This document shows positions 1 to 59,798 of a stretch of DNA of 64,000 nt, one piece after another. Below the pieces are notes generated by a model. That model was given only the letters and a program-made list of their open reading frames with translations. It had not been told where the DNA came from and ran no database searches. The stretch spans positions 186,001 to 250,000 of the IMG/VR virus record IMGVR_UViG_3300032334_001259, one strand, 5' to 3'. The position numbers and the translations under genes are program-made. Every line of letters begins with the position of its first letter. The first letter of the stretch is position 1.

Positions 1-7
1 TGCTAAC

Positions 8-5993: not shown

Positions 5994-6013
5994 TGAAGTA
6001 ATTCATAAACCGA

Positions 6014-6019
6014 TAAATA
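6014..6019 (+). promoter_or_regulatory. Late promoter core TAAATA
   Basis: Intergenic, before 6041. Confidence 0.6.
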
Positions 6020-6040
6020 ATTTAAAACAGGTTTTAAAAC

Positions 6041-7252
6041 ATGTCATATACCTTAACCGTAGTCAACCGCACACCAATTACCATTCAAAATGGTGCAACT
6101 GATAGTTCAACAAGTTTAACTCTCGTAGGTAAAAATTATCCAAATTATGGTCAAATTATTGAACAAGACTTAATTTATCTTATGCAGAACTTTGCTGGTG
6201 GCTCACAACCTGTAAATCCTGTAACTGGTCAGTTATGGTGGAGCACAACAAGTAATAATCTACAAGTTTATAATGGAACAACTTTTAAAACAATTGGTGG
6301 TGCAACAGTAAGCACAAGTGCACCGACAAGTAGCAGTATTGCTGGTGATCTTTGGTATAAGAGTGATGATGCACAGCTTTATCTTTACAATGGTAGTAGT
6401 TGGTTGCTTATTGGTCCAAATTATACAAGTTCACAGCAACAAACAAATGCTACAGCATTAACAATTACAGATAATACAAGTTCAACTCATACAGTATTAG
6501 CATTTTATGTTGGTAATACACTAACTGGTATTTTAAGTAAAGATGCAACATTCACACCACAAAGTCCAATCACTGGATTTGCAACCATTCTTCCTGGTTA
6601 TAATGTTAACTCAACAATTTTTGCTGGTAACATTACAATTAGTGGAACAATTATTCAAAATGCACAACCATATATAACAAGTCTTGGTACACTTACTGGG
6701 TTGACGGTAACAGCACCTATTGTTGGTAGTGTTCTTTATAATGCAAATACTGTTATCTATTCAAGTCAACCTAATATTACAAGTGTAGGAACACTGACAA
6801 GTTTAACAAGTAGTGGGACTGTTCTTGCACCAAATGTTACATCAACCTTAAATGGTGCTATTGGAACAGCCGCACCAAATGTAGCAACATTTACAAATGC
6901 TACTGTAAATAATCGCCTTGTTCAAAATGTTTATACTGCTGGAAGTGTGGGTGCAACTTATACAGTTGATTGGAGTGCAAGTAATTTTTATACATTAACA
7001 CTAACTGCAAGCTGCGCACTTACTTTCACTAATCCACCAGCAAGTGGTAAAGAACAAACTTTAACAATTGTTACAACACAAGGTGGTAGTGGTAGTTATA
7101 CATTATCATATCCAGCTGCAGTTCGTTGGGCTAACGGTGTTGCACCAACCTTAACTACAACTGTTTCATACCGTGATGTTCTTCAATTTGTAACATATGA
7201 TGGCGGAACTTCTTATTTGGGTCGTGCAATCTGGTCTAATGTAGCTCCTTGA
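6041..7252 (+). CDS. Tail fibre protein
   Basis: Shared N-terminal module TSLTLVGKNYPNYG...GQLWW; Thr/Ser-rich shaft; beta-sandwich tip (WANGVAPTLT...DVLQF). Confidence 0.7.
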   Translation: MSYTLTVVNRTPITIQNGATDSSTSLTLVGKNYPNYGQIIEQDLIYLMQNFAGGSQPVNPVTGQLWWSTTSNNLQVYNGTTFKTIGGATVSTSAPTSSSIAGDLWYKSDDAQLYLYNGSSWLLIGPNYTSSQQQTNATALTITDNTSSTHTVLAFYVGNTLTGILSKDATFTPQSPITGFATILPGYNVNSTIFAGNITISGTIIQNAQPYITSLGTLTGLTVTAPIVGSVLYNANTVIYSSQPNITSVGTLTSLTSSGTVLAPNVTSTLNGAIGTAAPNVATFTNATVNNRLVQNVYTAGSVGATYTVDWSASNFYTLTLTASCALTFTNPPASGKEQTLTIVTTQGGSGSYTLSYPAAVRWANGVAPTLTTTVSYRDVLQFVTYDGGTSYLGRAIWSNVAP

Positions 7253-43187: not shown

Positions 43188-43595
43188 TTAAACTTTACCA
43201 CTTGGGTCCATAATAGGCGGTAGACCTAACTTATTGGTTTTATTACCAAATTTGGCGGCTTGACGCTGTGTTTCGCCAGGTTTTATATCAACTGTCATGC
43301 TCATAGCATAACGTGGGTCTTTTGCCATCTTTTTATTGCCAGCAACTACGCCTACACCAGCAGATTCACGGTAAACTTTTTCGGCACCAACAGGGTTAAT
43401 CTTAAATCCCCACATCTTTAATTTATATAATAATTCTTCTTCATCTTGTGCAACAAAATCATATTTGTTTGTATAACCATAATAGGTTCCATTAGGACGT
43501 TTTGTTACATATGCAGTTTCGCCTGTGCGTGGGTTATCATATACAGTGGCGTAAGTTGCTTCGTCTAACTGTGAGAATAATTCGTTTAATAACAT
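43188..43595 (-). CDS. Putative internal head protein
   Basis: Start moved to ATG 43595 (TAATG overlap); leader MLLNELFSQLDE-A. Confidence 0.55.
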   Translation of the reverse strand: MLLNELFSQLDEATYATVYDNPRTGETAYVTKRPNGTYYGYTNKYDFVAQDEEELLYKLKMWGFKINPVGAEKVYRESAGVGVVAGNKKMAKDPRYAMSMTVDIKPGETQRQAAKFGNKTNKLGLPPIMDPSGKV

Positions 43596-44239
43596 TACAT
43601 TAAGTCCCATTTTTTAAGAGACCATTTTTTAACCATATCACGTGATAAATTTACTTTGGTTGATATCTCTCTTGCTGTTAAACCTTCATTTTTTAACATC
43701 TGAATAGAATCAAATTGTTCTTTCGTTAAACCACGACGAATCATCGCTCGTTTCTCTATAATTGATTTTTCCCACTTTACCCAAGGTTTTTTCTTACCTT
43801 TATGTGATTCTGATATTTTCTTTTTAGATTCTTCCGAATGAATTTTACCGTGCATTCTTGTATAATTTTTAGCAATGCCTTTTAATGCTCTACTTCTTTT
43901 TACATTTGACTCTTCTGACATAATTATGCCATTATTGCCATCGCCACCTTTTGTAGAATTATATCCATTTTTATAGGTATCAAATTTTTCTATAAGTTCT
44001 ATTTCTTTTTGTTTAGCAACTTCTGCGGAATCAACCAATTCTAATAATTCTATCTTCCACACATCAGTTCCATACTTGTTTATAGCATTGTAAAATTTTC
44101 TATTGTCACGAATTTTTATAGCATCTTTCTTATGCTGTTCAAATCTTTCAAATATGGTATTACCAGTAAAACCAATATATGATTTACCATTTACATTATT
44201 TGTAATTTTATAAACAGAATAGGTTTTTGCAATTACCAT
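43595..44239 (-). mobile_element. Free-standing GIY-YIG homing endonuclease with NUMOD3-type repeats
   Basis: SVYKITNNVNGKSYIG, RFEQH, GYNSTKGG, HSEESKKKIS. Confidence 0.85.
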
Positions 44240-45174
44240 GCACGGCAACTCCAATATCTTGCAGTTGTTCTATCTTTTGCTGTTTTGCAATTGTGTCTGG
44301 CTCTAAAAGACTTTCTGCGTTTTGGATTTGACCGCTTTATTCTCATTTTTTTGTCACCAAAATTTACTTTAATTACTTTGCCTGTTTTTGGATTTTTCAC
44401 GTACACTTTTTTCTTTTTAACATCGCCCTTCATAGGTTTGCCAAGTGGAACTTTACGACCATGATATTCTGCTTCTGCAACGAGTGATTCATGAAGTTCA
44501 TCCATAAAGAAACGAACTTCTTTGTCGCCTTTGTTAAGAACAATATCATCATCGTCTTCGTCAATATCCCAACCCATGTTGCTTAACATTTTTACGGCTT
44601 GGGCATGCTTACCTTCATCACCATGCCACCACATCTTTGCCAAACGTTTTAGAGTTTGGTGATTATCTTGCATAGAAACTACTTCACCTTCTGCTACACT
44701 ACTTTTCTGTGCGATTGCACGTTCTGCAGCTTGGTTGATGTCCTCACGACTTGCGCTATATGGGCTTACATTTAGCGTGGTGATTTCTTCGTATGCAGGC
44801 GTCATTTCATCATCGGTTTTTACAACTTTTTTAAGAAGATGATAATTTGTCTTACGAACATCATCAGACTCATGACCACTTGTTGCAATAAAATAATCAT
44901 CACGATAATGCTTTACATAATTGTTGCCACCAAAATCACGTTCTCGCCAAAGTTTTGCTTCACCAAGATATTTGGTTTCAATTGCGCCTAAACTTTCTAA
45001 TAAACCAAGTAATTTTTCATCACCAAGTAATGTAATACTTTCGTTATCCATTTCCATAATTTCAGTATCTACTTGTAGAATATTACTGAACTCAAGATAG
45101 ACACCATCACCAATGGTTGGACGATCTTCGCTTATGGCTGTAAGTTTTTCAATTAGGGAACGCATATCACTCAT
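44233..45174 (-). CDS. Putative head-packaged polyprotein with basic C-terminal domain
   Basis: Leader ending AISE; C-terminal KVNFG...SFRARHNC...ARYWSC; TAAATA at 45194-45199. Confidence 0.6.
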   Translation of the reverse strand: MSDMRSLIEKLTAISEDRPTIGDGVYLEFSNILQVDTEIMEMDNESITLLGDEKLLGLLESLGAIETKYLGEAKLWRERDFGGNNYVKHYRDDYFIATSGHESDDVRKTNYHLLKKVVKTDDEMTPAYEEITTLNVSPYSASREDINQAAERAIAQKSSVAEGEVVSMQDNHQTLKRLAKMWWHGDEGKHAQAVKMLSNMGWDIDEDDDDIVLNKGDKEVRFFMDELHESLVAEAEYHGRKVPLGKPMKGDVKKKKVYVKNPKTGKVIKVNFGDKKMRIKRSNPKRRKSFRARHNCKTAKDRTTARYWSCRAW

Positions 45175-45196
45175 GTTAAAAATCCTGATATGTTAT

Positions 45197-46147
45197 TTAT
45201 TTTGCTTTGGTGCTTACACGAATTGGTGCTTTACCTGTTCCGCCAGTATCTTTACCACCACGACCTGCTGCATTTTGTGCTTTACGTTTACGAGTAACTG
45301 CACTGCGTTTTTGTGCCGCACTCATTTTACGTGCTTTGGCTGCTGGTACACATTTTGCATAGCCACTCTTGCTGCCGCTTGTTCCGCATGGTGGATGCTT
45401 ACCGCCAACCTTCTTGCCAATATTAACCCACTTGTCTTTAAACCACTTGTGTAGATTGCCCTTGGCTTCTGGTAATACAAGATTTCCGCAATGAATACAA
45501 TAATCAACTTGTTCAAGTAGCACACTCTCGGTAATTGGATCACATGTAAGTTCTGTGCTTTCTAAGGTCATTTCCATAGCGATTTTTTTCTTATATACGT
45601 ATAGTTTGTAACCTGAAGCATCATCGCTAAAAATCTTTTTCTGTTGGACTGGATCAGTTACAGCCTTAAAACCCATCTGCTCAAAGAATTTTGCTGCCCT
45701 ATCATATAACTTGATTCTGCTTGGTTCGTTTGATTTTGCACCCATGACAATTACTTCAGTTTTAGGATGTCTTGCAATAAAGTGATTCAAACAATAGGCA
45801 ACGCCATTGAATATTTTAAAAACAGTATCTCTTTCAGTGCCAGTTGCAGCATGGGTATCAGGTCTGCTCTGCGTTTTATTTTCAAATGCCAATACATAAT
45901 AATTTTCATTATATTCTTTAAATGTGACTTCAATTTTGGTTTTATTAACGGTGAAATCATAATCAGAACCGTAATTATCTGCATACACATCAAAATTTTC
46001 TGGCGCTTTGTTTACGTCGATAAATTCTTCAATTTCTTCGCTTTCGTTCTTGACGCAGTTTGGATACTTCTTTCCAAACATTGTTTTCATGCCTTCTTTA
46101 TGATAGCCTTTCCAACATGCTTCGCCAAGAACATCTTCCATCTTCAT
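45197..46147 (-). CDS. Putative head-packaged polyprotein
   Basis: MKMEDVLGE-ACWKGY...PNCVK; central SRIKLY domain; basic LHKWF...KCVP domain. Confidence 0.6.
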   Translation of the reverse strand: MKMEDVLGEACWKGYHKEGMKTMFGKKYPNCVKNESEEIEEFIDVNKAPENFDVYADNYGSDYDFTVNKTKIEVTFKEYNENYYVLAFENKTQSRPDTHAATGTERDTVFKIFNGVAYCLNHFIARHPKTEVIVMGAKSNEPSRIKLYDRAAKFFEQMGFKAVTDPVQQKKIFSDDASGYKLYVYKKKIAMEMTLESTELTCDPITESVLLEQVDYCIHCGNLVLPEAKGNLHKWFKDKWVNIGKKVGGKHPPCGTSGSKSGYAKCVPAAKARKMSAAQKRSAVTRKRKAQNAAGRGGKDTGGTGKAPIRVSTKAK

Positions 46148-46881
46148 TTGGATTTATTTCCCCAGTTTTTAGCACCAGCCTTGCGGCACTTAACTAACGC
46201 ACCGCTTGCATAAGCACTTGGCCATACTTTATAACGGCTCTTAACTTTGTAATAACAAGCATCTTTCTTTTCATTCATAAGACTTGCTTCATACATTAAT
46301 CCACCACAATGTGGACAACTTTCTTCTACAGCTTCTAACTCATCTGTTGTATCACCAGTAACAGGATATGTCTTGCCACCAACATTGAATGATTTTTTAC
46401 CTGCTTTTATAGCATTCATTCTTGCATCAGTAAAGGCATTGGATTCTTCCATGTCATCGTGTTCAGCATTACCAATGATTTCATTATAATTGTCCATGCA
46501 AAGATAATCATGACTCTTACTCAACTCTATAAGTTTTTCAGCAACATCGTGTAAATCCATATCAGTCTTTGCATCTTCACGTGCATATTCCATGATTCTA
46601 ATAAGCAATGGAACATCCATTGTTACAGTATCTGTAGCATCTGCTTCTGGAATTACTTCAACATTTTCTTGTGGAATTACTTTTGGTTTACGAATAGCAC
46701 TACCTGGTATCATCTTGTCCATTGCAAGTTCAACACCAGCACGTTGTTTTTTGCTTTTACCAGCAGCATGACCCTTCATTAAATTAGGGTTGCGTGATAA
46801 TCGCTTTGTTACATAAGAAGTAAGAGTTTTATTGCGTAGTTCTTCTAAATCTGTCTCAACAATAATATCATTTATACGCAT
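46144..46881 (-). CDS. Putative head-packaged polyprotein
   Basis: MRINDIIVE leader; DVPLLIRIMEYAREDA; C-terminal DACYYKVK...WPSAYASGALVKC. Confidence 0.6.
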   Translation of the reverse strand: MRINDIIVETDLEELRNKTLTSYVTKRLSRNPNLMKGHAAGKSKKQRAGVELAMDKMIPGSAIRKPKVIPQENVEVIPEADATDTVTMDVPLLIRIMEYAREDAKTDMDLHDVAEKLIELSKSHDYLCMDNYNEIIGNAEHDDMEESNAFTDARMNAIKAGKKSFNVGGKTYPVTGDTTDELEAVEESCPHCGGLMYEASLMNEKKDACYYKVKSRYKVWPSAYASGALVKCRKAGAKNWGNKSK

Positions 46882-48948: not shown

Positions 48949-51900
48949 TTAAACTTCACGCAAAGACAATCTACCCGTCTCATATTCTCTTGTAAATGTA
49001 TCAAGAAGTGCTTGACCACCAGCTTCTTTATAGTGTTTTACCAATATTTCATATGCTTCCGTTGGTGTATCAGCACCAACTTCAATAAATCGATCAACAG
49101 AGGTATCTCTATATAATGCAAACACTTTACTTGCATTTGCACGACCAATACGGTCTACAATTACATTAGAACGCTGTGGCTGTGGTTTTGGTTGTGGTTT
49201 TGGTTTTCTTACACCAGTTTTATAATCAGTTGGTGTTACCAGATGATATGGTCCATTACCATTACTAATATTATTTGCAATGTTGCGATAACCGCCATTA
49301 TTAAGATTTGCTAATGCACTTTCTTCACTATCGCCACGAACACGAACAAATACAAAGTTATTTGTATCACTTACAACATAGAACTCAATCTTGCCGCTAC
49401 CAACAACAACAATGTGATTTATATCTTGCTTGCCTATGGCTTGACGTGCGTTTCTGCTGCCCCAATGCAATCTACGATTACCACGATAAACAATCATATT
49501 GTTATCAAATGCATTTGCATAATAATCAGCAATTTCTGCAACTTGATCTTGTGTATATTTTGCTGGATCAAAACGTGCAATAATATGGTCATCATAATCT
49601 TCAATGCGATATGCAAGAGTATTGTAAACCTGTTCAGCATTAGGTTTGCCATCCAAACCGTTTCGCTCAATTTTTATGATTTCACCATAAAGTGATGCAA
49701 TGTTATTATCACTATAATTATATCCTATAACATTCAAGTAATTTTTAACATCTTCTCTGCTAACATTTGGTATAAGATTTTTTACAGCTTCAAATTCTAT
49801 TTCATCAGTGTTTGCTTGATTTGGATAAAGTCCTAATCTGCTATACTCACGATTCTTTAAACCATTGCCCTGCATATAAATCGTTGTGACGTAAATGTTA
49901 AAATATGGGAACTTTAACAAATATGCTTGTGTATCCATATTGCGTTCATTTAGCCAATCATATGCAAGTTTAATCATTTCATATAGTTGTTCACCATGAA
50001 CTTCTACTACTTCATCACCTAATTTAGTTTCAATTTTAGCAGTAATTTTACCTTGACCGATTGGTTTAACTGGCTCACGTGACTTACGAACTGCTTGAAC
50101 TTGACGCACCAATTCTTCTTTGTCAATATCACCAGTAACATATTTTGCAAATATATCAACTGTGCTACTGTCTTTCTTTACGCTATCTACAATAAGTTTA
50201 TAAAACTTCTTGTGATATTCTTGTTTGCTATCTTCTGGATCAGCAGCCGCAGCCATAGCACGAACATAACGTAACATTGTGTTACGGATTTCATCATACT
50301 TTTCAAAGTAATTGCCACCAGCACTACGAAACTCAATATAATTAGACTTGATGTTTACACTTACGTAACGATCACCTTTAGTTCCACTGATAATTTTGTT
50401 TACTTCTCTATTAGTTTGGTCAAGTAAACCAGCACGTGCATCATCCAATATCTTTGGTAGTGACTTACGGAAATCACGTGTTTCTGTTGCTTTATATGCT
50501 TGGTCAAACATACTCTTTGTCCAACGGCTGTTTAGTCGTTCAAAACGGTCTAATACATACTTGTCACCAAGCAACAATATAAGTTTAAGGTGATTTATAT
50601 TTGCCATAGTTTGGTCAGGAACACTAACACCAATATGGAAACCTGTTGTGCGATTAGTATAATAACGGTTACGCTTTGCCCATGTGAATACGTTATTAAG
50701 TGCTTCAAGTGCATCATCAAGTAACATTGGTGGTGATACAAGTTCTACACCGCCATCTTCAAAGTCTTCTGGACTATCTAAACTGCTATCTGGTTCAAAT
50801 ATCCAGTAATCACCACGACTTGTGCCGTGATAACCACTGCTTTCAACTGCGCTATAACCTGTTGCATTTTCAAAACTATTCACTAAATCATCATAAGTTA
50901 CATCACCTGAACTACTGCCATCAGTCATATATGGCCAATCAAGACTATCAACATTTGTTTCACGATTAATGTAACGTGCAAAACCTTGCATTGTGTCAAT
51001 TTCGTGGATTCTTAAAAAGTCTTGCCAGTTTTCTTTATCGTTTTCATTTTCCCAATTTTCACGAACAGAAGATTCGGCTTCATCTTTTTGTTCTTCGGTT
51101 ACTTCACTGTAATCATCTACGCCTACTTCATCAGCAATTGCTTGTTTCCATTCATCGCTGTTTTCATATTCATAATATTGATCACTTACATAATCGCTAA
51201 AGTTTTCATAGAATGCTTCTAATGCACGTTCTACACTGCGACGACTATTGCCATAATCACCTTCTGTAAAGAAGTCTATAATCATACGTTGGCGATCTTT
51301 GTAAGTTTCATCTGCTGGAAAATCTTCATCTTGATCATAATCTGGCTCTGGGTCTTCTTCTTCACCTTGTAGACCAGGTACATACATTTCAGTTTCAAAG
51401 CCAACACGCATTTGTTGTGCAAACTCGCTCTTGGCAAATGCTTCCAAACTCTTTGGATTCATTTTTACTTCTGCAAGGAAAGATTCTGTTAGACTTTCTT
51501 CAATGCTTTCGTTGCGTTCTGGAACTGCTACAATAGTATAACCTGGTCCCATATTATGTTCAGTTGCCCAACTTTGTGCATAACGACGAGCAGCAGTTTC
51601 ACTTGCAGCAGTAAATGTATGGTAAACACCGCCCATACTACCTACAATATTATATGTAGTTTCTCCTTGCGGTGTAGCACGATGCTGTGCAATAATTAGT
51701 GGTGGTATTGTATTGCCAGCAATATCATAACCACGCTGTATTTCCCAATCTGCATATTGTCGTTGTTGTTCTGGTTGTGGTCTTGGTTGTGGAATTAGTT
51801 GACCTTGCGCATCCCATAGATTATTGTTGTTTGGTGTTCTAATTGCAATATTTGCTAATGATAGACCACGTTGTTGTGCAAAACTTTGTGCTGCTTGACT

Positions 51901-54900
51901 TGCTTGGTAAAAACTTCGTGCTTGTGTTGCTAATAATTCTGTGCCATCGCTTCGGTTTACAACAACATATGTTCCGCCAGATTGTTGTTGCTGTACTGGC
52001 TGTGCTGATGCACCGCCAACAGTTCTCCATTCCCACCTGCCATTTATAAGACGATTATCATCTGCCCATTGTCTTGCATATTGGTATGCTGCTGCTTGAC
52101 TGTCAGCAGTAAAACGATGAACAACACCGCCTTGCGATAGTATTTCAAATTGTTGTCCTGACTGTGATGCTTGTTGTGTTTCATTAGGTCTAAACAGATT
52201 GTATGAATCAAGTGCTATATTATTTCTATTTGCATATTCACGAGCTGCTGCAATAGCCTCTTGGGTAGTAGTATAAGTTCCTTGTGCAATTACTCTATCA
52301 CCACTACTGGTTCGCATTTGGAATACAGCGCCAGCAGTTTGGTATGGCATTTGCGGAATAGTTGCAGCAGTTTGTGTTTGTCCAACAGTTTGTGCATCTG
52401 TTTCACGGCGTGTCATAAATTGCGGAACATCAATCATTTCACCACTTGGTGCTTGTAGTTGAACACTATCAGGATAACCACCATCACGTGCAATTCTGCG
52501 ACCATAACCACGAGCACGATCCATTACATCAAGTAGTGTGCCAAACATAGTTACTTGACGTGAACCGTTTATAAACAACATAAAGTTTTGTTGTGCGTCT
52601 TGTGGTGTTTGTGTTTGTTGTGGTTCGCTACGGCGTGTTTCGTTGGCTGTAAAAACATTATAATATGTATTAACACCCATATAATTGTGTTTTAATTCAT
52701 AATTATTATAATTTACACCACGACCACGCAACCACCTAAATGCTAAATCAGAAGCATCGTATTTGTTATCTGCACGAACAATCTGCACTGCTAATTCTGT
52801 ATCTTTATAAACTATTTCATAACGATTGCTACCACTGCCAATACCAGTGTCACTTGCAACAAACGCCAGTGGTGGTAGTGCAGGCATTAAACCACTTACA
52901 TACGTAGCATTTTTCAAACGAACCAGCATTACATCTTGTAGATAATAGCCACTGTCACTGCTTGTCCAATTACGTGCATCGTCATAAACTTCATAAGGAT
53001 CATTGCCATAAAACTTTTTAAGAACTGTTCCGTTCTTGGTGCGAACTTCATATTCCTCTACACCAGAACCTTTTTTATCACGACTAATAGCACGTTTACG
53101 CTGTTCATTACGAACATGTGATAACAGTGCAGTCTTTGGAATAGTGCCGCTTACATATTGACTAAAATACTTGATTGTATCTGTATCTTCTTTTGGTGCA
53201 TTAGTTGCTAATAATTTATAAAACTTCTTTGCATATTCTTGCTTTTCTGCTTCTGGATCAATCGCAATACTCAATGCATAAACTGTGCGGTAAAGGGTGT
53301 TTATAACTTTATCTAAATCCATATCTAACCAATTACCGCCAGGACTACGAATCTCAATACGATTATCTTTGGTGTTGATACTGGTAAACTTATCAGTATT
53401 AGTATCGTGAATCATCTTACTAACAGTTTTGTTTAAGTTAGTGCGAATCATACTAATTGCTTGTTCTGCTTTGCCTGGATTACGCTTGATTACAGTGGCT
53501 ACTTTATCTAATGCACTTACTGCATAATTATTACCAAGACGACCGAATGTATCAAGAACATACTTGTCTCCTAAAAATAGTGCCATCTTTACATAATCAA
53601 GATTTTGCAAACTATAACCAGGCAGACTTACATTCATATGCAGACCAGTGGTTTTATTGGTATAAGCATTTCCACTCTTTGCCCACGCTGCAACTTTCTT
53701 TATAACATCTACCATTTGCGGAATAGTTAGTGGTGGACTTACAAACTCCCAACCTTCACCACCACGACCGCTGCTTGCATGCAAACTACTATCTGGTTCA
53801 ACCTTAAAGTAATTAGGTTTTTGGCGTTGGGTGTGATAACCACCACTTACTTGTATATCATAACCTACGGCTTGACTAAAACTACGTGCAGGCGGACCAT
53901 CGCCACGACCACGACTATTATCATAATCTGGTTCTGTCCAGTGCGGCCAATTTATAGTTCCACTAAAATAATTGTGAATGTCACTATATGTATCACCACC
54001 AATAACACTATCTAAAAAGTCTTCTACAAGTGAGCCGTCTTCGCTTGCTTTATCATACCACTTTTCATAGTTTTCACGAGTGAAGCGCATGTAAGCATCA
54101 ATTGGTGGTATTTCAGGAAATAGTTCACCTTGCTTTTCATAATCACGACCATAGGTTTTATCTAACCATACTTGATATCGTGTATCAGTTTGTCCACTTT
54201 CTTGACTATTTGCCCAATTATCAAACGCAATTTTAGCATAAGTTTCATATTCACCAGCAATACTTTCTTGAACTTGTTGTATATCACGGCGAGTATTATG
54301 GTCACCACGGAAGAATTCCATAATTGAATTTTGTAAATCAGTTAGATTATCTGCAAATATGTTTCCATCTTGGTCATAATCTGGTTCGCTGTCAAAGTCT
54401 TCGTATGGATCATAGTCATCGTCATCTTCAAACTCTGTAACGATAAGTTCAAACTCTAAACCAGCACGTGCAAGTGGCAATGCATCAACTGCTTTTTTAA
54501 GTGCAGTAGGACTCATTGCAACTTCATTTAATAATTCTTCTGTAATCAAACTATCGCCAAGCACTACATCTTCAAGCCAAGGAATCTTTGGACTTTGTTG
54601 ATCTCCACGTGGATATTCATCCCATGGAAACTTTGCTACTGCACGGTCAGTAAGAGTAGGACCACCACCAACTGTTCCAAGAATACTTGGTGCGTGTTCG
54701 CTTTGCTTTTGTGGTCCAAGTAAGCGCATAAACTTTACCTTGTCTCTTGGCATTACATAATCATAAGAAAGTTGGTTATCAATTGTTCCATCAATAATTA
54801 TATCTACTGCAATATTTTTGAATCCAAGTGCGGTTTGTGCATATACACGATAAGTCTTTCGCAGATCAGGCAACGTTCCTTGAACAAAGAATGTGACAGT

Positions 54901-57486
54901 TGCTTTTGCAAATCGCACATATCCAAGTTTAAATGCTGCTTCATATCCATCTATACCTTGGCTATGTAGATAACCTTCGTGATATTCTGGTGGAACATAA
55001 ACAACTTTACGATCAGGCAATATCCAACCATGTGTTTCATTTGGGTCAAGTGCTTCTTCAATGCTTTCAGCCTTTTGCATCCACTTACTTTTAATGTATT
55101 CAATTACACCCATAGTATCTTTAATATTATTCTGCTGCATGAATCGCACAATCTTGCGACCATTTTCATAATCAGTATCACCAGGCTTTCGTGAATTGCT
55201 TAATTCTCTACGTAAACCAAAGTCATCACCATCAATATTATAATAACGCAAGTCAAACAATATCTTGCTTGCTTCTTTGCTTAATGTTGAACGATTCTGT
55301 CCAAATAACAATTCAACATAAGGAGCCAAATAACTTTTTCTGCTATATTGCTTACGTGATGGTTGTGGACCTTTAAGGATATTCTTTGCCGCACCAATTG
55401 TAATACTCTTTGCAGTATTTTGTAATCTCCATGCTTCTTCATCGGCATAAAGATATGTTGGAATACCACGCTTTTTTGCAGCAAGTAATACACGGCGCAC
55501 CGCTGGACTTTGGAACTCATGTTGTTCTTTAATTAAAACATGAACACTCATTACTGGTGTAATTGCAATAGTGCCATCACGACTGAATACACGGTCTTCA
55601 CTTTCACGATGACGTGTAGTGCTTTGGTCATTCCAATAATCAATTGGTTTTACTTTATAATTTTGGTTTAACCAACGACCATTCAATACAAACATTACAG
55701 CACTATTACCAACATATTTGTGATAACCACCGCTACGACTGCGTGTAGTGCTTAAAAAGTATGGATAACCTTTTGGTTGTAGTTTATATTCCCAATCACT
55801 GCCAACAGTGTTGCTCAACTTAAACTCACCACTTGTTAATATTTCAGCGGCAGCAGTTGTTCCTGTGTAATGGTATAGAACATCAGTTGCTAATTCTGTT
55901 AGTGGTTCAACGCCTTCATCAAGTTGTGATTGTATACTTTTAACAATTTGTGGTGATGCTTTTCCGCTTGTCCATTCAGTTTCAATACTGCCATCAGGAT
56001 TCATCCAGAATAATGCTGCTTCACCATTGTCAATAGCATCAAGATAACGATCAGCAACATAGAAATTATGATGGAAATCATTTTCTGCAGCTTTTTCATA
56101 TGTATAGGTTGCTAATACATGACCATCACGTGTATCAAATACACCAATGTAAAATGGTTTACCACGGAAACTACCAACATTCTTGTTGGTGCTTTCTTCT
56201 AAATCTTTACGATGACTACGCTTGTAGTATGAACACCAACCATTAGGCGCAATCTTGCCTTTTACCGCACTACAACCATGAGGAGGACGCCACATAGTGC
56301 AGTGGTCGCAACGTTGACCATTGCGAGGCATTGCCTGATACTTTGCTTCGGCTTTGGTTGATTTTTCTGCGGCTTCTTCAACTTTCTTTTGTGCAAGATG
56401 CATTATATCTTTTTTAGGAACAACATAAACATCAATGGTTTTCTTGTTCTCTACATCAATCGCTTTTTTCATACGATTTAAACCATCAGCAACACTTAAA
56501 TGACCATCATCATTTTGTATTACAAGTAGCGGATAACGTGTGTCAGCATTCTGCATACGCTCACGCTGTGCTGCATTATCTTGCCACCAACTTAAATCGT
56601 GTTTAATTTTATCTAATGGAAAATTCTTGTGCAAATATTGTGGTTTAGATTGTGCAAACTTTAATACCGCTTCTACACTAAACTGATTGCCAGCATCATC
56701 GCCAAACTTACTACCGTGAAAGTAATCTTTTGCTTCATACTTTGGTAAACCGTATAAATCTAAATCAACACCGTGTGTAGAACCATAATAGGTATCATCT
56801 ACATTTGGTTTATATGGTTTACGACCAACCTTTACAAGTTTTGGTAAATCATCCCAATCACCACCAATGCCTGGTGCTTCTGTAATGTTTTCTTCAACTG
56901 CTTCGCCTAATCCCAAACCAATACGCACTGCTTGCATAAGTGTTTTGCCATCTACCATGATGTTTTGTGGGACTTGTGTAGCACGTTCAAAAGCATCTGC
57001 ATCACCACTCTTTGCTGCTTCACGTGCATTAGTAGCACTGGTTAGTCGTGGACTTTCAACAAATGTAAGTGGTTCAAATTTATAAAAACCGTGTGCAACT
57101 TCTTTGCCATTATATTGTTCAAGCACTGGACGCATACTTGCCATATCATCTTCGCCAGCAACAAAGGTTGCACTACGGAAACCTTTTTCATAAAGATAAG
57201 CAGCGGCTTGTAGGAATGTTTTAATATTTGGATCTTCTACGATATGACCTTTGGTTTCTGGATATAATGTATAAAGCCAACGTAGTTTTAAATCATATGG
57301 CAGTGGATTTTTTTTCTTGTCTTGTGACTTACTTAAAAATCCTGCCCATGCACCATTCTTTGCACTGGTAATTGTAGTTTGGATTAATCCCTGATGACCA
57401 AAATGTGGTGGATTTAGTCTGCCAAAGAAGAAAGAGATATGTGGTCCGCTTGCTTCTTTTAATGTGCTGTTAATAATTGTCATCAT
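48949..57486 (-). CDS. 2845-aa multidomain polyprotein: HIGH-type nucleotidyltransferase, ParB-like, HiPIP, ART-like, two amidoligase domains and repeat modules
   Basis: GRLNPPHFGH; VADGLNR; CDHC-x8-C-x12-C; YHYT/STT/ESE; two copies of GxExE...EPDSS...ExVSPP...TGxH...IExRSxGG. Confidence 0.8.
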   Translation of the reverse strand: MMTIINSTLKEASGPHISFFFGRLNPPHFGHQGLIQTTITSAKNGAWAGFLSKSQDKKKNPLPYDLKLRWLYTLYPETKGHIVEDPNIKTFLQAAAYLYEKGFRSATFVAGEDDMASMRPVLEQYNGKEVAHGFYKFEPLTFVESPRLTSATNAREAAKSGDADAFERATQVPQNIMVDGKTLMQAVRIGLGLGEAVEENITEAPGIGGDWDDLPKLVKVGRKPYKPNVDDTYYGSTHGVDLDLYGLPKYEAKDYFHGSKFGDDAGNQFSVEAVLKFAQSKPQYLHKNFPLDKIKHDLSWWQDNAAQRERMQNADTRYPLLVIQNDDGHLSVADGLNRMKKAIDVENKKTIDVYVVPKKDIMHLAQKKVEEAAEKSTKAEAKYQAMPRNGQRCDHCTMWRPPHGCSAVKGKIAPNGWCSYYKRSHRKDLEESTNKNVGSFRGKPFYIGVFDTRDGHVLATYTYEKAAENDFHHNFYVADRYLDAIDNGEAALFWMNPDGSIETEWTSGKASPQIVKSIQSQLDEGVEPLTELATDVLYHYTGTTAAAEILTSGEFKLSNTVGSDWEYKLQPKGYPYFLSTTRSRSGGYHKYVGNSAVMFVLNGRWLNQNYKVKPIDYWNDQSTTRHRESEDRVFSRDGTIAITPVMSVHVLIKEQHEFQSPAVRRVLLAAKKRGIPTYLYADEEAWRLQNTAKSITIGAAKNILKGPQPSRKQYSRKSYLAPYVELLFGQNRSTLSKEASKILFDLRYYNIDGDDFGLRRELSNSRKPGDTDYENGRKIVRFMQQNNIKDTMGVIEYIKSKWMQKAESIEEALDPNETHGWILPDRKVVYVPPEYHEGYLHSQGIDGYEAAFKLGYVRFAKATVTFFVQGTLPDLRKTYRVYAQTALGFKNIAVDIIIDGTIDNQLSYDYVMPRDKVKFMRLLGPQKQSEHAPSILGTVGGGPTLTDRAVAKFPWDEYPRGDQQSPKIPWLEDVVLGDSLITEELLNEVAMSPTALKKAVDALPLARAGLEFELIVTEFEDDDDYDPYEDFDSEPDYDQDGNIFADNLTDLQNSIMEFFRGDHNTRRDIQQVQESIAGEYETYAKIAFDNWANSQESGQTDTRYQVWLDKTYGRDYEKQGELFPEIPPIDAYMRFTRENYEKWYDKASEDGSLVEDFLDSVIGGDTYSDIHNYFSGTINWPHWTEPDYDNSRGRGDGPPARSFSQAVGYDIQVSGGYHTQRQKPNYFKVEPDSSLHASSGRGGEGWEFVSPPLTIPQMVDVIKKVAAWAKSGNAYTNKTTGLHMNVSLPGYSLQNLDYVKMALFLGDKYVLDTFGRLGNNYAVSALDKVATVIKRNPGKAEQAISMIRTNLNKTVSKMIHDTNTDKFTSINTKDNRIEIRSPGGNWLDMDLDKVINTLYRTVYALSIAIDPEAEKQEYAKKFYKLLATNAPKEDTDTIKYFSQYVSGTIPKTALLSHVRNEQRKRAISRDKKGSGVEEYEVRTKNGTVLKKFYGNDPYEVYDDARNWTSSDSGYYLQDVMLVRLKNATYVSGLMPALPPLAFVASDTGIGSGSNRYEIVYKDTELAVQIVRADNKYDASDLAFRWLRGRGVNYNNYELKHNYMGVNTYYNVFTANETRRSEPQQTQTPQDAQQNFMLFINGSRQVTMFGTLLDVMDRARGYGRRIARDGGYPDSVQLQAPSGEMIDVPQFMTRRETDAQTVGQTQTAATIPQMPYQTAGAVFQMRTSSGDRVIAQGTYTTTQEAIAAAREYANRNNIALDSYNLFRPNETQQASQSGQQFEILSQGGVVHRFTADSQAAAYQYARQWADDNRLINGRWEWRTVGGASAQPVQQQQSGGTYVVVNRSDGTELLATQARSFYQASQAAQSFAQQRGLSLANIAIRTPNNNNLWDAQGQLIPQPRPQPEQQRQYADWEIQRGYDIAGNTIPPLIIAQHRATPQGETTYNIVGSMGGVYHTFTAASETAARRYAQSWATEHNMGPGYTIVAVPERNESIEESLTESFLAEVKMNPKSLEAFAKSEFAQQMRVGFETEMYVPGLQGEEEDPEPDYDQDEDFPADETYKDRQRMIIDFFTEGDYGNSRRSVERALEAFYENFSDYVSDQYYEYENSDEWKQAIADEVGVDDYSEVTEEQKDEAESSVRENWENENDKENWQDFLRIHEIDTMQGFARYINRETNVDSLDWPYMTDGSSSGDVTYDDLVNSFENATGYSAVESSGYHGTSRGDYWIFEPDSSLDSPEDFEDGGVELVSPPMLLDDALEALNNVFTWAKRNRYYTNRTTGFHIGVSVPDQTMANINHLKLILLLGDKYVLDRFERLNSRWTKSMFDQAYKATETRDFRKSLPKILDDARAGLLDQTNREVNKIISGTKGDRYVSVNIKSNYIEFRSAGGNYFEKYDEIRNTMLRYVRAMAAAADPEDSKQEYHKKFYKLIVDSVKKDSSTVDIFAKYVTGDIDKEELVRQVQAVRKSREPVKPIGQGKITAKIETKLGDEVVEVHGEQLYEMIKLAYDWLNERNMDTQAYLLKFPYFNIYVTTIYMQGNGLKNREYSRLGLYPNQANTDEIEFEAVKNLIPNVSREDVKNYLNVIGYNYSDNNIASLYGEIIKIERNGLDGKPNAEQVYNTLAYRIEDYDDHIIARFDPAKYTQDQVAEIADYYANAFDNNMIVYRGNRRLHWGSRNARQAIGKQDINHIVVVGSGKIEFYVVSDTNNFVFVRVRGDSEESALANLNNGGYRNIANNISNGNGPYHLVTPTDYKTGVRKPKPQPKPQPQRSNVIVDRIGRANASKVFALYRDTSVDRFIEVGADTPTEAYEILVKHYKEAGGQALLDTFTREYETGRLSLREV

Positions 57487-57488
57487 AT

Positions 57489-57515
57489 AATCCAGATAAA
57501 ATATTTATCTGGATT
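57489..57515 (-). promoter_or_regulatory. Late promoter TAAATA inside a 12-bp inverted repeat that covers the polyprotein RBS
   Basis: AATCCAGATAAA-3 nt-TTTATCTGGATT immediately before ATG 57486/57483. Confidence 0.65.
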
Positions 57516-57916
57516 CATTTAGAACGATTTTTACTATAGTAGCCATTCTTAATTGCTCTTATTGTTTTAAGAGCATGGTATCTTTGTTTTAAATCACCCT
57601 TTTTCTTATATTCTGCGCTTTTAAAGTGTGGATTAGCGTCAAGTTCTTTGTGTTGTCTTAATAAATCTTCTTCTGTATCGTTATCATATTCATGTGGTCT
57701 GTATGTTACAACTTGATATGGGAAATGTATTCCCTTGTTCATTGTTGCAAGATTTTGTTCTACCCAATCTGCACCAATACGATCAGCTTCATCTTGAGAA
57801 TCTGCACTAAAAGTATCAACTGTTCTGTATGAACGTTGATTGTATGCATTTGGAAATAATAATTGTACGGCATATGTTTGTTGGGTATCTTCGCCAATTA
57901 TTTCACTATAACGCAT
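57515..57916 (-). CDS. Putative internal head protein carrying one copy of the polyprotein repeat module
   Basis: Start moved to ATG 57916; leader MRYSEIIGE; TFSADSQDEADRIGADW; TAAATA at 57936-57941. Confidence 0.55.
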   Translation of the reverse strand: MRYSEIIGEDTQQTYAVQLLFPNAYNQRSYRTVDTFSADSQDEADRIGADWVEQNLATMNKGIHFPYQVVTYRPHEYDNDTEEDLLRQHKELDANPHFKSAEYKKKGDLKQRYHALKTIRAIKNGYYSKNRSK

Positions 57917-57941
57917 CTTATAATCCTTCAAGTATTATTTA

Positions 57942-59081
57942 TTAGGTTGGTGTCCAACGATGTCTTGGAACCAATTTAACATTAGGTTCACCAGCTTTAC
58001 CATAAGCAACATAGCCCTCACCACCAGGCTCACCTTTTGTAGTTTGTGTAATGTCACTTAGTTCACTGTCAATTTGTTCAATAATATTATTCTTGATAGC
58101 ACGTAGATTTTCTAATACATTAAATGTAGCAAGGAATCCACGACTATTCTTGTTTACCCATTCAGTAATCTTATTCTGCATAGGAACACTTTGGCGACTG
58201 CTTGGTAACCATTCTAAAAACTTGTTAGCAAGTCCAGTTGTAATACCACTACGTGCCATTTGGTTGTTAAAATTATATAATACTTGCTTAAATCCAGACA
58301 TCTTCATAGCTGCAAGATTCTGGTCATTTAAGAAATTATCAATAGCAATCTTATTTGTGGCAACATACTTCTGTAAATTAGCAAGTGCAGTTGTATCTAT
58401 TTTTGGTTGTGATTGGGCATAACGTGGACCTAATACAATCAAGCCAGCAGTTTTATTAAATGCTGTAAAATCATTTATAGGTTGTTGCTCATCATCACTT
58501 AAACCAAACTCTGGGAAGTAAGCATGACCAACAGCTGCTGCTGTGCTTTTTGCAATACGTTGTCCAAGTTCACTATTTGCCTTAACACTGTATGTTACAT
58601 TGTTTGGTGTAAATGTGTAAGCACCGTCTTTAAGTGGTGGACGATTCATATAAAGTAAATCAGCATATACATAACCACGAAATTCTTTCGGTGTAGCTGC
58701 TTCAAATAGCGGCCAAAGGCTTGCAAATTGTGTAGCAAATGCTTGTCTTTGCTTGATTTCTTCTGGTGTTTCTGCTTTACCAGTTTGCATAATAAAACGT
58801 GCAAGGTCACCTGCACTTTGTGATTTACCATCTATGGTTCGTTTTAACCAACCGTTGTGACCAACCATGATGAATTTACCATCAGGTTCACGTCCCCAAT
58901 ATACTTGTGGTTTGCCATCCCATTTCCAACGAATATTTTGCTGTGGATTTTTGGCAATTTCTGCAAGTTTGTTTATTGCAGTAGTTGCACCCAAACTACC
59001 ACTTATAAGAACCAAGTCTTCAATATGTTGGAAAGCACGACCAACTTTTGGTGCTTCGGTAAGGATTTGGTTTATAAACAT
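57942..59081 (-). CDS. DUF6267-like protein with KxDG ligase/nucleotidyltransferase-like motif
   Basis: HIEDL, KWDGKP, YADLLY, GEGYV, KLVPR; leader MFINQILTE-A. Confidence 0.6.
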   Translation of the reverse strand: MFINQILTEAPKVGRAFQHIEDLVLISGSLGATTAINKLAEIAKNPQQNIRWKWDGKPQVYWGREPDGKFIMVGHNGWLKRTIDGKSQSAGDLARFIMQTGKAETPEEIKQRQAFATQFASLWPLFEAATPKEFRGYVYADLLYMNRPPLKDGAYTFTPNNVTYSVKANSELGQRIAKSTAAAVGHAYFPEFGLSDDEQQPINDFTAFNKTAGLIVLGPRYAQSQPKIDTTALANLQKYVATNKIAIDNFLNDQNLAAMKMSGFKQVLYNFNNQMARSGITTGLANKFLEWLPSSRQSVPMQNKITEWVNKNSRGFLATFNVLENLRAIKNNIIEQIDSELSDITQTTKGEPGGEGYVAYGKAGEPNVKLVPRHRWTPT

Positions 59082-59722
59082 TATAAAATATTTAGTTTGT
59101 TTTTTCTATATGGGCCACGAGATTTTCCTTTTCTTGCATTCCCCATTTTAATACGTGTTTCACTTGATAAAGTTCTTCCTTTAAGAGATGAACTTATTTT
59201 TTGTTTTGTTTCTTCCGAACGTTTTTTTCCTTTATTTGCATTACCTATTTTTTCACAAATTTCTTTATTGTTTGGGTTATTTTTCTTTACTTTGCTTAAT
59301 TTGGCACGATGCTCTGGTGATTTTATTTTTCCTTTTGTTGCAATACTTAAATTATCGCAATGTTTTTTGGAAAATATTCTGCCTTTTTGTACAATACTCA
59401 TTTTAATTCGTGTTTCTTTGGATGGTGATAATCCACTTATTCCATCGCCGCCATCTGTTTTATTATGTAATATACCAGTGCCAATATCTTTGCGACCATA
59501 CCACGCAATCATACGCCGTTCTATTGCTAATGCACCTATTTCGGTTAAATTATGTTCTAAAATAATAATATTATTTTTGTTTTTTGGTGTAGACGTATTA
59601 TAATGCTTTTCATATGCACGTCTATCTTTGCCTTTACCAATATAATATGGAGTTAAATCATCTGCTCTTATATAAGCATATACGTAATATCCGCTTGGCG
59701 GATTAGTGCTGGTAAATACCAT
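59081..59722 (-). mobile_element. Free-standing GIY-YIG-like homing endonuclease with NUMOD3 repeats
   Basis: YVYAY...[17 protein letters not shown], repeated SxETRxKMS; TATAAATA at 59780-59787. Confidence 0.8.
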
Positions 59723-59798
59723 TGCTGTGTTCCCTATAAACATAGAGTAGGTAGGGCTGCAACCCGTGACCTACACTATTATTTATAATTTAATTATA

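Follow-up and report, generated by a model that had tools for sequence, protein, structure and literature searches.

[quoted passage not shown] The mini-HiPIPs hold their ligands in a C-x2-C-x8-C-x12-C spacing, Cys22/25/34/47 in PioC (PMC7462912) and Cys20/23/32/45 in Iro, with a Trp at Cys4(-1) and Tyr, Trp or Phe at Cys4(+2 or +3) shielding the cluster (PMC7462912). Cellular HiPIPs are exported as holoproteins that receive their cluster in the cytoplasm before Tat export, and the fold is cluster-driven (PMC7462912).

Three sets of phage proteins also bear on the locus described here. The internal head proteins of T4 are small, basic, single-module proteins without cofactors, serving as anti-restriction inhibitors (PMC3012670; PMC9026906), from a highly mosaic, fast-shuffling gene set. 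[quoted passage not shown] Polyvalent proteins of phages and conjugative elements string 2-15 unrelated effector domains together, including ParB-like domains, are extensively shuffled among orthologues, and have been proposed to be delivered with the DNA and released proteolytically (Iyer et al., 2017, PMC5512222); that survey mentions no HiPIP, iron-sulfur or amidoligase domain. Finally, Agrobacterium phage Atu_ph07 Gp196 (AUZ94978.1) and Ralstonia phage RsoM2USA_26 are single-module amidoligase homologues without a HiPIP module.

Here we examined a 64,000-nucleotide window of the metagenome-derived, 338-kb genome of a jumbo T4-like phage (positions 186,001 to 250,000 of IMG/VR record IMGVR_UViG_3300032334_001259), in which a first-pass annotation had pointed to a HiPIP-type [4Fe-4S] mini-domain at 56221-56352, lying inside a phage polyprotein and bounded by VEE-A and LEE-S. 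This observation is correct. The annotation gave no strand; the feature is on the minus strand, where translation yields 44 residues (P0028) that contain the annotated string and correspond to residues 379-422 of a 2845-aa protein (P0001). The protein and its parts, identified with Pfam, PHROGs and sequence comparisons, are:

48949..57486, minus strand: giant ORF of 2845 aa, a string of unrelated modules in the order leader, cytidylyltransferase, ParB-like, HiPIP, unknown modules, amidoligase 1, small repeated alpha/beta domains, amidoligase 2, more repeats.
57454..57486, minus strand: N-terminal 11-residue leader ending L-K-E, a candidate CTS for the whole polyprotein.
56890..57453, minus strand: cytidylyltransferase-like module, residues 12-199 (phrog_3041, E 3.8e-32; phrog_395, E 3.2e-20; tblastn matches to cyanophage cytidylyltransferases).
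56410..56694, minus strand: ParB-like module, about residues 265-359, directly upstream of the HiPIP module in this phage (phrog_17560, E 8e-10); relatives carry Pfam ParB_N PF02195 at the equivalent place.
56374..56382, minus strand: upstream junction V-E-E (residues 369-371), a predicted prohead-protease site that cuts before A372.
56194..56373, minus strand: predicted mature HiPIP module, residues 372-431, 60 aa, 6.87 kDa, pI 9.4.
56233..56310, minus strand: the four predicted [4Fe-4S] ligand codons, Cys393 (56308-56310), Cys396 (56299-56301), Cys405 (56272-56274) and Cys418 (56233-56235).
56194..56202, minus strand: downstream junction L-E-E (residues 429-431), a predicted protease site that cuts before S432.
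53053..54522, minus strand: amidoligase module 1, residues 989-1478, entered after L-N-E988 (Pfam Amidoligase_2, E 6.4e-14; homologous to Atu_ph07 Gp196 and RsoM2USA_26).
50002..51468, minus strand: amidoligase module 2, residues 2007-2495, entered after L-A-E2006 (BLASTP to Atu_ph07 Gp196, E 3e-29, starting at Gp196 residue 11).

The ligand spacing is identical to that of PioC, G-W precedes the last Cys with Y-Y at +2 and +3, and a Tyr-Gln lies near the N-terminus, as in PioC. The four cysteines are invariant in 29 aligned homologues, and the Trp is at least 90% conserved. They are also the only cysteines in the 2845 residues, against 26.8 expected (Poisson P about 2e-12). Against the HIPIP profile the excised module scores 26.9-27.1 bits (E 5e-6), above the curated gathering threshold of 22, which all seven family members searched also exceed, although the score falls to 19.3 bits, below the cut-off, when the whole protein is scanned. 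A profile built from the module family hits PioC at E 2.4e-13 with 7 sequences and E 6.4e-15 with 29 sequences, over 50 aligned residues; the next hits are other HiPIPs, two of them at about 2e-5. In this alignment the predicted mature N-terminus of the phage module falls on residue 2 of mature PioC. A first AlphaFold (AF2) model from 7 sequences was poor (pLDDT 55), but a later model reached pLDDT 77, and its top 17 Foldseek hits are all HiPIPs (TM 0.68-0.71, rmsd 1.6-2.0 A to 3h31, 6xyv and 1isu; 37% identity to PioC in the structural alignment), with E-values of only about 4e-3 because the protein is tiny. Iro itself was not included in these comparisons, and neither cluster binding nor redox potential was measured. 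In contrast to PioC, the phage module has a strongly basic C-terminal tail (KRSHRKD) and no photosynthetic or iron-oxidation partner genes nearby. It also lacks a Tat signal peptide and a periplasmic destination, with a polyprotein junction or a T4-CTS-like leader in their place: it is internal to the giant protein, and its standalone homologues have 5-15-residue acidic or aromatic leaders with no twin-arginine motif and no hydrophobic stretch, a difference that concerns biological role rather than fold family.

The same 60-residue cassette sits almost unchanged in at least 28 other large phage ORFs, and a nearly invariant module was counted in 14 giant proteins and 28 large viral ORFs, with at least 7 upstream and at least 6 downstream neighbour types. 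Relatives of 1573-3071 aa have shuffled architectures, which differ among the 16 relatives compared. Cassette junctions are always x-x-E and mostly [LIV]-x-E, the T4 prohead-protease motif: in all 15 distinct upstream contexts E occupies P1, with L, I or V at P3 in 13 of them, and [LV]-x-E is kept before at least six different downstream modules, in 9 distinct downstream contexts. The cleavable-looking flanks are not a coincidence, the cassette keeping [LIV]-x-E on both sides in many polyproteins with different neighbours. These are sequence-level observations on a short and common motif. In the giant protein as a whole [LIVM]-x-E is not depleted (34 observed, 37 expected), only about 6 of 12 BLAST-defined module breakpoints carry a site within 6 residues (which we estimate at roughly P 0.01), and the junction near residue 251 is K-Y-E, while two relatives have T-N-E. 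The module core, however, has no [LIVMF]-x-E site in any of 25 leader or polyprotein forms, whereas two of four leaderless forms have two each.

Free-standing versions of 60-75 aa in T4-like phages begin with leaders resembling the T4 CTS, ending in [LF T]-x-E at the alignment position of the upstream junction, and these versions end within a few residues of the downstream one. Synechococcus phage S-SRM01 has MKSFQEFLFE, with 6 of 10 residues identical to the T4 sequence and 3 conservative, and others have MKSLDDFLSE, MKFKQFLQE and similar. The standalone forms clearly fit the T4 pattern of a leader of about 10 residues with hydrophobic or aromatic residues at positions 4 and 7. The leader of the giant protein itself fits this pattern only loosely, so that its status as a CTS is left undecided; relatives have different leaders that all end [LF]-x-E just before the cytidylyltransferase domain, two relatives lack the leader, and the cytidylyltransferase of cyanophage ACG-2014f starts with a leader ending F-L-T-E. 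Further leaders of this kind, and a promoter-like sequence, occur around the giant ORF:

59780..59787, minus strand: TATAAATA, the T4 late-promoter consensus, at the head of the minus-strand gene run that ends in the giant ORF.
57942..59081, minus strand: upstream neighbour gene, 379 aa, DUF6267, no cysteines, with CTS-like leader MFINQILTE.
57515..57916, minus strand: upstream neighbour gene, 133 aa counted from the ATG at 57916, with CTS-like leader MRYSEIIGE.
43188..46881, minus strand: three further genes with CTS-like leaders, 43188-43610, 45197-46147 and 46144-46881.

Five of the nine genes in the genome that fit the strict leader pattern lie within 16 kb around the giant ORF, and the giant protein of one relative (P0019) starts with the module of gene 45197-46147. 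The TATAAATA copy is the only one in the window, where 9.4 were expected; of 18 copies genome-wide, 13 lie within 62 nt upstream of a same-strand start codon. It may, however, belong to the intervening homing-endonuclease gene. The cysteine-poor profile of the giant protein resembles that of this phage's large structural proteins and differs from that of its DNA polymerase.

The genome encodes a T4 gp21-type prohead protease (Peptidase_S77, 90.3 bits, 146086-146511 of the phage genome), next to scaffold, major capsid protein (MCP) and portal homologues. Peptidase_S77 is also present in both near-complete records that carry leader-bearing forms of the module and absent from a complete 70-kb record with a leaderless form. 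The head module keeps T4 grammar: a core protein starts MRSQYEQLIE, the protease has LIE-7, and the scaffold has 2.15 times the expected number of sites. Evidence on virion location is indirect and consists of the protease gene, the cysteine content of the giant protein, the late-promoter-like TATAAATA at the head of the gene run and the amidoligase homologues. Gp196 and RsoM2USA_26 are homologues of both amidoligase modules (E 3e-29 and 1e-31), with short leaders ending L-T-E or L-S-E exactly where the junctions of the giant protein lie. Gp196, encoded two genes from the portal gene, was found in Atu_ph07 virions by ESI-MS/MS with 14 unique peptides and 30% coverage, although those virions were PEG-purified and the proteome also lists replication proteins, so that false positives are possible. 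This bears on packaging of the polyprotein, not on the HiPIP itself. As in polyvalent proteins, many unrelated domains are joined and rearranged here, but there is no zincin-like autopeptidase (no HExxH motif), and release would depend on the prohead protease. Membership of the ParB-like module in the DdrB-like clade was not examined, which leaves undecided whether the protein has one of the hub domains of that class (MPTase, ART, MuF or DdrB-like ParB).

We propose, with a probability of about 0.55, that residues 372-431 are a true PioC/Iro-class HiPIP that T4-superfamily phages have re-deployed as capsid cargo. In this view the module is made late in infection, in the cytoplasm, as one bead of a polyvalent precursor, receives its [4Fe-4S] cluster from the host assembly machinery, and is carried into the prohead by the N-terminal leader of the precursor, or, where it is a separate gene, by its own 9-13-residue T4-CTS-like leader. 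The S77 protease would then cut after V-E-E371 and L-E-E431, freeing a 6.9-kDa, basic, otherwise site-free mini-protein, whose aromatic-shielded cluster should tolerate the oxidising virion interior. Ejected with the DNA, it would act early in the new host as a one-electron carrier or oxidant, probably together with co-packaged enzymes. Our analysis establishes the HiPIP homology and predicted fold, the absence of a signal peptide, the cassette behaviour, the junction and leader motifs and the presence of the protease gene; cluster binding, cleavage, packaging, ejection and the redox role are inferred, no experimental data exist for this phage, and neither cleavage, packaging nor cluster binding has been shown for any member of the module family. 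The interpretation in the first-pass annotation, a signal-less, cleavable HiPIP in a likely virion protein with a redox or iron-carrying role, is supported in each part that could be tested, with the virion assignment resting on indirect evidence alone and the cargo role on inference. [quoted passage not shown] What differs from the T4 internal proteins is the concatenation of many cargo modules behind one leader, one of them an iron-sulfur protein. More tentatively, and somewhat less likely than not, T4-superfamily phages may package an oxygen-stable [4Fe-4S] electron carrier and inject it with the genome, as a CTS-tagged mini-protein or as one bead of a giant precursor cut at [LIV]-x-E junctions; this would be the first iron-sulfur ejection protein and electron carrier delivered by a virus particle, and a true phage polyprotein in which a single leader loads a whole string of enzymes into the capsid.

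Two alternatives appear unlikely, to a similar degree. The giant protein could be an uncleaved cytoplasmic multi-domain enzyme that is never packaged, with the HiPIP domain as a built-in redox cofactor or sensor for neighbouring catalytic domains during infection. Its gene lies among replication and nucleotide-metabolism genes, beside DNA polymerase and a deoxyribonucleotidase, rather than in the head module; protease motifs are not globally depleted; polyvalent proteins are not always processed, N4 vRNAP being packaged uncut (PMC5512222); and one standalone copy lies about 2 kb downstream of nrdA/nrdB. Yet the variety of neighbours means that no conserved intramolecular partner exists, T4-CTS-like leaders on standalone forms serve no obvious purpose in a purely cytoplasmic protein, the rest of the protein is cysteine-free like this phage's structural proteins, and the amidoligase homologue is virion-associated in Atu_ph07.

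Alternatively, the module may be packaged and cleaved as proposed but have no electron-transfer role, the HiPIP scaffold, holding a cluster or perhaps Zn, being used only as a very compact, protease-resistant, basic bead that, like T4 internal proteins, binds DNA in the head or inhibits a host defence protein after ejection. Its basic pI is consistent with this, as is the conservation of nearly every surface residue (85-100% identity, while the flanking modules drop to 35-60%), a pattern that fits a specific protein-protein or DNA interface. Nothing in our data separates a redox role from a scaffold role, but the features that tune a HiPIP cluster (four Cys, Trp before Cys4, aromatics after it and the Tyr near the N-terminus) are kept across the 29 homologues, and, the fold being cluster-driven, a cluster-free form is unlikely to fold.

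A chance motif or generic zinc knuckle, for which only the sub-threshold whole-protein Pfam score and a weak overlapping hit to the metal-binding domain ATPase-cat_bd might be cited, is effectively excluded by the excised-module scores, the PioC profile match and a fold search that returned only HiPIPs.

Read on the minus strand, positions 56221-56352 encode 44 residues (translation P0028), which contain the string described in the first-pass annotation and correspond to residues 379-422 of a single open frame of 2845 aa, 48949..57486(-) (the giant protein, P0001). Cysteines lie at residues 393, 396, 405 and 418, which is C-x2-C-x8-C-x12-C, with G-W preceding the last Cys and Y-Y following it, while V-E-E ends at residue 371 and L-E-E ends at residue 431. 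The annotation described the sequence accurately, leaving only the strand unstated.

The annotation read this stretch as a HiPIP-type [4Fe-4S] mini-domain, and had named the lack of a match to the HIPIP profile as one of two findings that would refute it, the other being the lack of a bound Fe-S cluster. Such a match was found: Pfam HIPIP (PF01355) scores 26.9-27.1 bits (E about 5e-6) on the excised module, against a gathering score of 22, although it scores only 19.3 bits when the whole protein is scanned. PHROGs offered no family for the module, and a megablast search of the region against GenBank phages found nothing. A word search with the 67-residue piece, however, found six free-standing proteins of 58-74 aa at 57-78% identity, and a profile built from these (A1) hit PioC of Rhodopseudomonas palustris (6xyv) at E 2.4e-13 and after that only HiPIPs. 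A 29-sequence profile (A2) improved this to 6.4e-15 for PioC, and to about 2e-5 for the Rhodothermus and Rhodocyclus HiPIPs. PioC is described as the smallest HiPIP; its ligands, Cys22/25/34/47, have the same spacing as those seen here, it has a conserved Trp before the last Cys and an aromatic residue at +2 or +3, and its fold is driven by the cluster (PMC7462912). This last point explains why a first, shallow AlphaFold run on seven sequences was too poor to use (pLDDT 55); with 29 sequences the model reached pLDDT 77, and its 17 best PDB matches were all HiPIPs, with TM 0.68-0.71 and rmsd 1.6-2.0 A. Homology and fold are therefore settled, and an exhaustive search of representative proteins was not made for this reason, whereas cluster binding is a strong inference but is not shown. 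The family profile was not searched exhaustively against all proteins, cellular and viral members were not counted or each scored for a Tat signal or a CTS leader, and no rooted tree was made to date the loss of the Tat signal. The annotation's interpretation of the module as a small HiPIP without an export signal is thus supported, while its suggestion of a redox or iron-carrying cargo rests on inference.

The window belongs to a complete 338,435-bp virus record (G000) with terminal repeats and 35.5% G+C. Its DNA polymerase is 46-49% identical to those of the jumbo phages Phosso and Atu_ph07, and it has T4-type major capsid, scaffold, portal and prohead-protease genes. The giant protein strings together a cytidylyltransferase, a ParB-like module, the HiPIP, several modules with no family, two amidoligase domains and many small repeated domains, and has no HExxH motif. 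Its only four cysteines are exactly the HiPIP ligands, whereas 26.8 more would be expected at the genome's own cysteine frequency of 0.94% (Poisson P about 2e-12). Most relatives of 1573-3071 aa show the same pattern, and the phage's large structural proteins are similarly Cys-poor, while its DNA polymerase is not. Further features of the giant protein and its surroundings are listed here.

Features in window coordinates, or in coordinates of the whole genome where G000 is named
2-2707 (+); G000 174011-188707: part of a 4898-aa ORF inside which the window begins, the largest in the genome and also Cys-poor at 0.16%, followed by tail-fibre-like genes at 4365-7252
43188-46881 and 57515-59081 (-); G000 285843-286322 and 297068-297964: genes marked by a family of leaders of the form M-[RKQ]-x-x-[DE]-[IV]-[IL]-x-E (for example MRINDIIVE, MRYSEIIGE, MRISEIIVE), which may all be capsid-targeted cargo
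46144-46881: neighbour gene with a weak Rieske hit
51490-53050 and 48952-50000 (-), residues about 1480-2000 and 2496-2845 of P0001: at least seven repeats of a small domain of about 35-60 residues, with a weak hit to DUF2188 (19.4 bits), separated by Gln/Pro-rich linkers
55054-55912 (-), residues 525-811 of P0001: module with no Pfam family
57942-59081 (-): 379-aa DUF6267 protein
59081-59743 (-): GIY-YIG-like homing endonuclease gene with NUMOD3 repeats
59780-59787: the only copy of TATAAATA in the window

Three of these call for comment. The Rieske hit in gene 46144-46881 (14.9 bits, E 0.026) suggested a second Fe-S cargo, but the sequence shows a CPHC zinc-ribbon-like motif with no Rieske ligand pattern, and we rejected this reading. 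The module at residues 525-811 has standalone homologues in the jumbo phages SCTP-2, HRDY3, Dickeya JA11 (two tandem paralogues) and Vibrio K566, and its conserved H-Y/F-T, S-T-T-R and S-E-x-R motifs recall ADP-ribosyltransferases such as T4 Alt, a resemblance that we did not test. The DUF6267 protein has a K-W-D-G motif resembling the lysine nucleotidyltransferase motif of ligases, a likeness that comes from reading the sequence only; PHROG 455 covers both this protein and the cytidylyltransferase N-terminus of the giant ORF, so the two are fused in other phages.

The module behaves as a shuffled cassette with fixed borders. Sixteen giant relatives of 1573-3071 aa were found, of which 14 carry the module, almost letter for letter, at different positions. 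A scan of IMG/VR found 64 viral loci, of which, in our parse, 28 place the module inside large ORFs and 28 carry it as a 60-75-aa gene; a 29th ORF listed by the parse was a chance cysteine-rich frame (in locus L050) and is not counted, and of eight further loci that did not fit our motif pattern, six also proved to be small standalone genes. Across the large ORFs the upstream neighbour takes at least seven forms and the downstream neighbour at least six, yet similarity begins and ends at the same residues. The residue before the module is always Glu, the residue two before that Glu is L, I or V in 13 of 15 distinct contexts and Thr in two, and the module always ends [LV]-x-E. This position-specific evidence is all that the motif offers: [LIVM]-x-E is short, its global depletion in the giant protein, examined as a sign of protease exposure, was not seen (34 against 37 expected), and only about half of the BLAST-defined breakpoints carry a site. 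One standalone copy lies about 2 kb downstream of nrdA/nrdB, which suggested a YfaE-like role as reductant of the RNR cofactor; other genes intervene and no other locus repeats the link, and this possibility was not pursued.

These borders invite comparison with T4 head biology. In T4, internal proteins and Alt enter the prohead through a leader of about 10 residues, MKTYQEFIAE, which the gp21 protease removes after [L/I]-x-E; positions 4 and 7 of the leader matter for targeting and positions 8 and 10 for processing, and Alt is trimmed at both ends, at ITE-6 and LTE-619 (PMC8442874, PMC9026906, PMC5694885). The free-standing HiPIP genes start with just such leaders: the protein of the isolated T4-like cyanophage S-SRM01, QPX48026.1, has MKSFQEFLFE, and others have MKSLDDFLSE, MKFKQFLQE or MKTFNQILSE. 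Each leader ends at the alignment column where the polyprotein junction lies, and none of the 20 other annotated genes in the S-SRM01 locus has such a leader. A few distant homologues have no leader and begin exactly at the predicted mature N-terminus. Both near-complete records with leader-bearing genes encode an S77 protease, whereas a complete 70-kb record with a leaderless gene does not. The module core contains no [LIVMF]-x-E site in any of 25 leader or polyprotein forms, while two of the four leaderless forms contain two each.

In the window's own genome the head genes keep the T4 grammar: a core protein (G000 146586-147443) begins MRSQYEQLIE, the S77 protease at G000 146086-146511 has LIE-7, the scaffold has twice the expected number of sites, and the capsid protein has four sites in its first 42 residues. 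Although the giant protein's own leader is only loosely CTS-like, nine genes fit a strict leader pattern, and five of them lie within 16 kb around the giant ORF.

Independent hints of a virion location come from transcription signals and from the amidoligase modules, although none of this is direct evidence for the HiPIP module, and the giant gene itself lies among replication genes. The T4 late-promoter word TATAAATA is strongly avoided, being about five-fold under-represented, with one copy in the window against 9.4 expected and 18 in the genome; 13 of the 18 lie just upstream of start codons, and the copies that exist lie mostly 2-62 nt upstream of them, as expected for a T4-type late promoter that is avoided elsewhere. 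The window's single copy heads the minus-strand run of homing endonuclease, two leader-bearing genes and the giant ORF, and the endonuclease gene, sitting between it and the leader-bearing genes, may have inserted into a late operon. Neither environment nor expression was examined with sequencing reads. The amidoligase modules are homologous to Atu_ph07 AUZ94978.1 and RsoM2USA_26, and the short leaders of those two proteins (ending L-T-E and L-S-E) stop exactly where P0001 has L-N-E988 and L-A-E2006. The RsoM2USA virion data cover only ten abundant gel bands that do not include ORF26, and are therefore uninformative. AUZ94978.1, however, is Gp196, as we mapped through the portal, Gp198, and through matching masses, and Gp196 was detected in Atu_ph07 virions with 14 unique peptides and 30.2% coverage (PMC6102473, Table S5), with the caveat that the preparation was PEG-purified and that its list also includes replication proteins.

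We propose the following mechanism, in which homology and fold are established by our comparisons and every subsequent step is inferred. The cluster would be inserted in the cytoplasm, as happens for Tat-exported HiPIPs before export (PMC7462912), and the precursor targeted to the prohead core, where the S77 protease would release a 60-residue, 6.87-kDa protein of pI 9.4, residues 372-431 of P0001. The protein would then be stored with the DNA; HiPIP clusters are buried behind aromatic residues and are handled in air in the NMR work cited here. In this view it is ejected with the genome and used as a one-electron carrier or oxidant early in infection, with neither partner nor reaction identified; as no specific partner is claimed, no complex was modelled. 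Its small size, about that of PioC, makes passage through the tail in a folded state plausible, as has been argued for T4 IPI* (PMC3012670).

HiPIPs are known as Tat-exported periplasmic electron shuttles of phototrophs and iron oxidisers. By sequence and fold the module is a member of this family, but it lacks the family's export route, and by its flanks it behaves like a T4 internal protein. The carrier protein fits the 'polyvalent protein' concept (PMC5512222), although that survey lists no HiPIP, Fe-S or amidoligase domain and invokes a different protease, and in the literature library searched we found no paper describing a viral HiPIP. If the module is capsid cargo, phages deliver ready-made redox cofactors into cells at the moment of infection, which would open a new class of early effectors and would put iron in virions in a defined chemical form. 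The junction and leader grammar further suggests that prohead proteases can process long strings of cargo modules; this would explain how jumbo phages load many enzymes with one targeting signal, and it gives a rule for predicting ejected proteins from sequence. The interest is high because the central prediction is directly and cheaply testable in an isolated phage, S-SRM01, as well as with the established T4 CTS packaging system.

Leaders of this kind also occur on genes elsewhere. In the 99-kb contig L002, which carries a standalone HiPIP gene, a 193-aa gene 1.6 kb downstream (L002:6783-7364, plus strand) starts MKTFQEFYE, another T4-CTS-like leader, and lies next to a phage lysozyme gene, which recalls the position of the ip genes near gene e in T4. 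In Synechococcus phage ACG-2014f (L072:1186-2400, plus strand), the gene annotated as 'cytitidyltransferase' carries an N-terminal leader ending F-L-T-E, followed by a long low-complexity spacer, which suggests that this widespread cyanophage enzyme may also be capsid-targeted.
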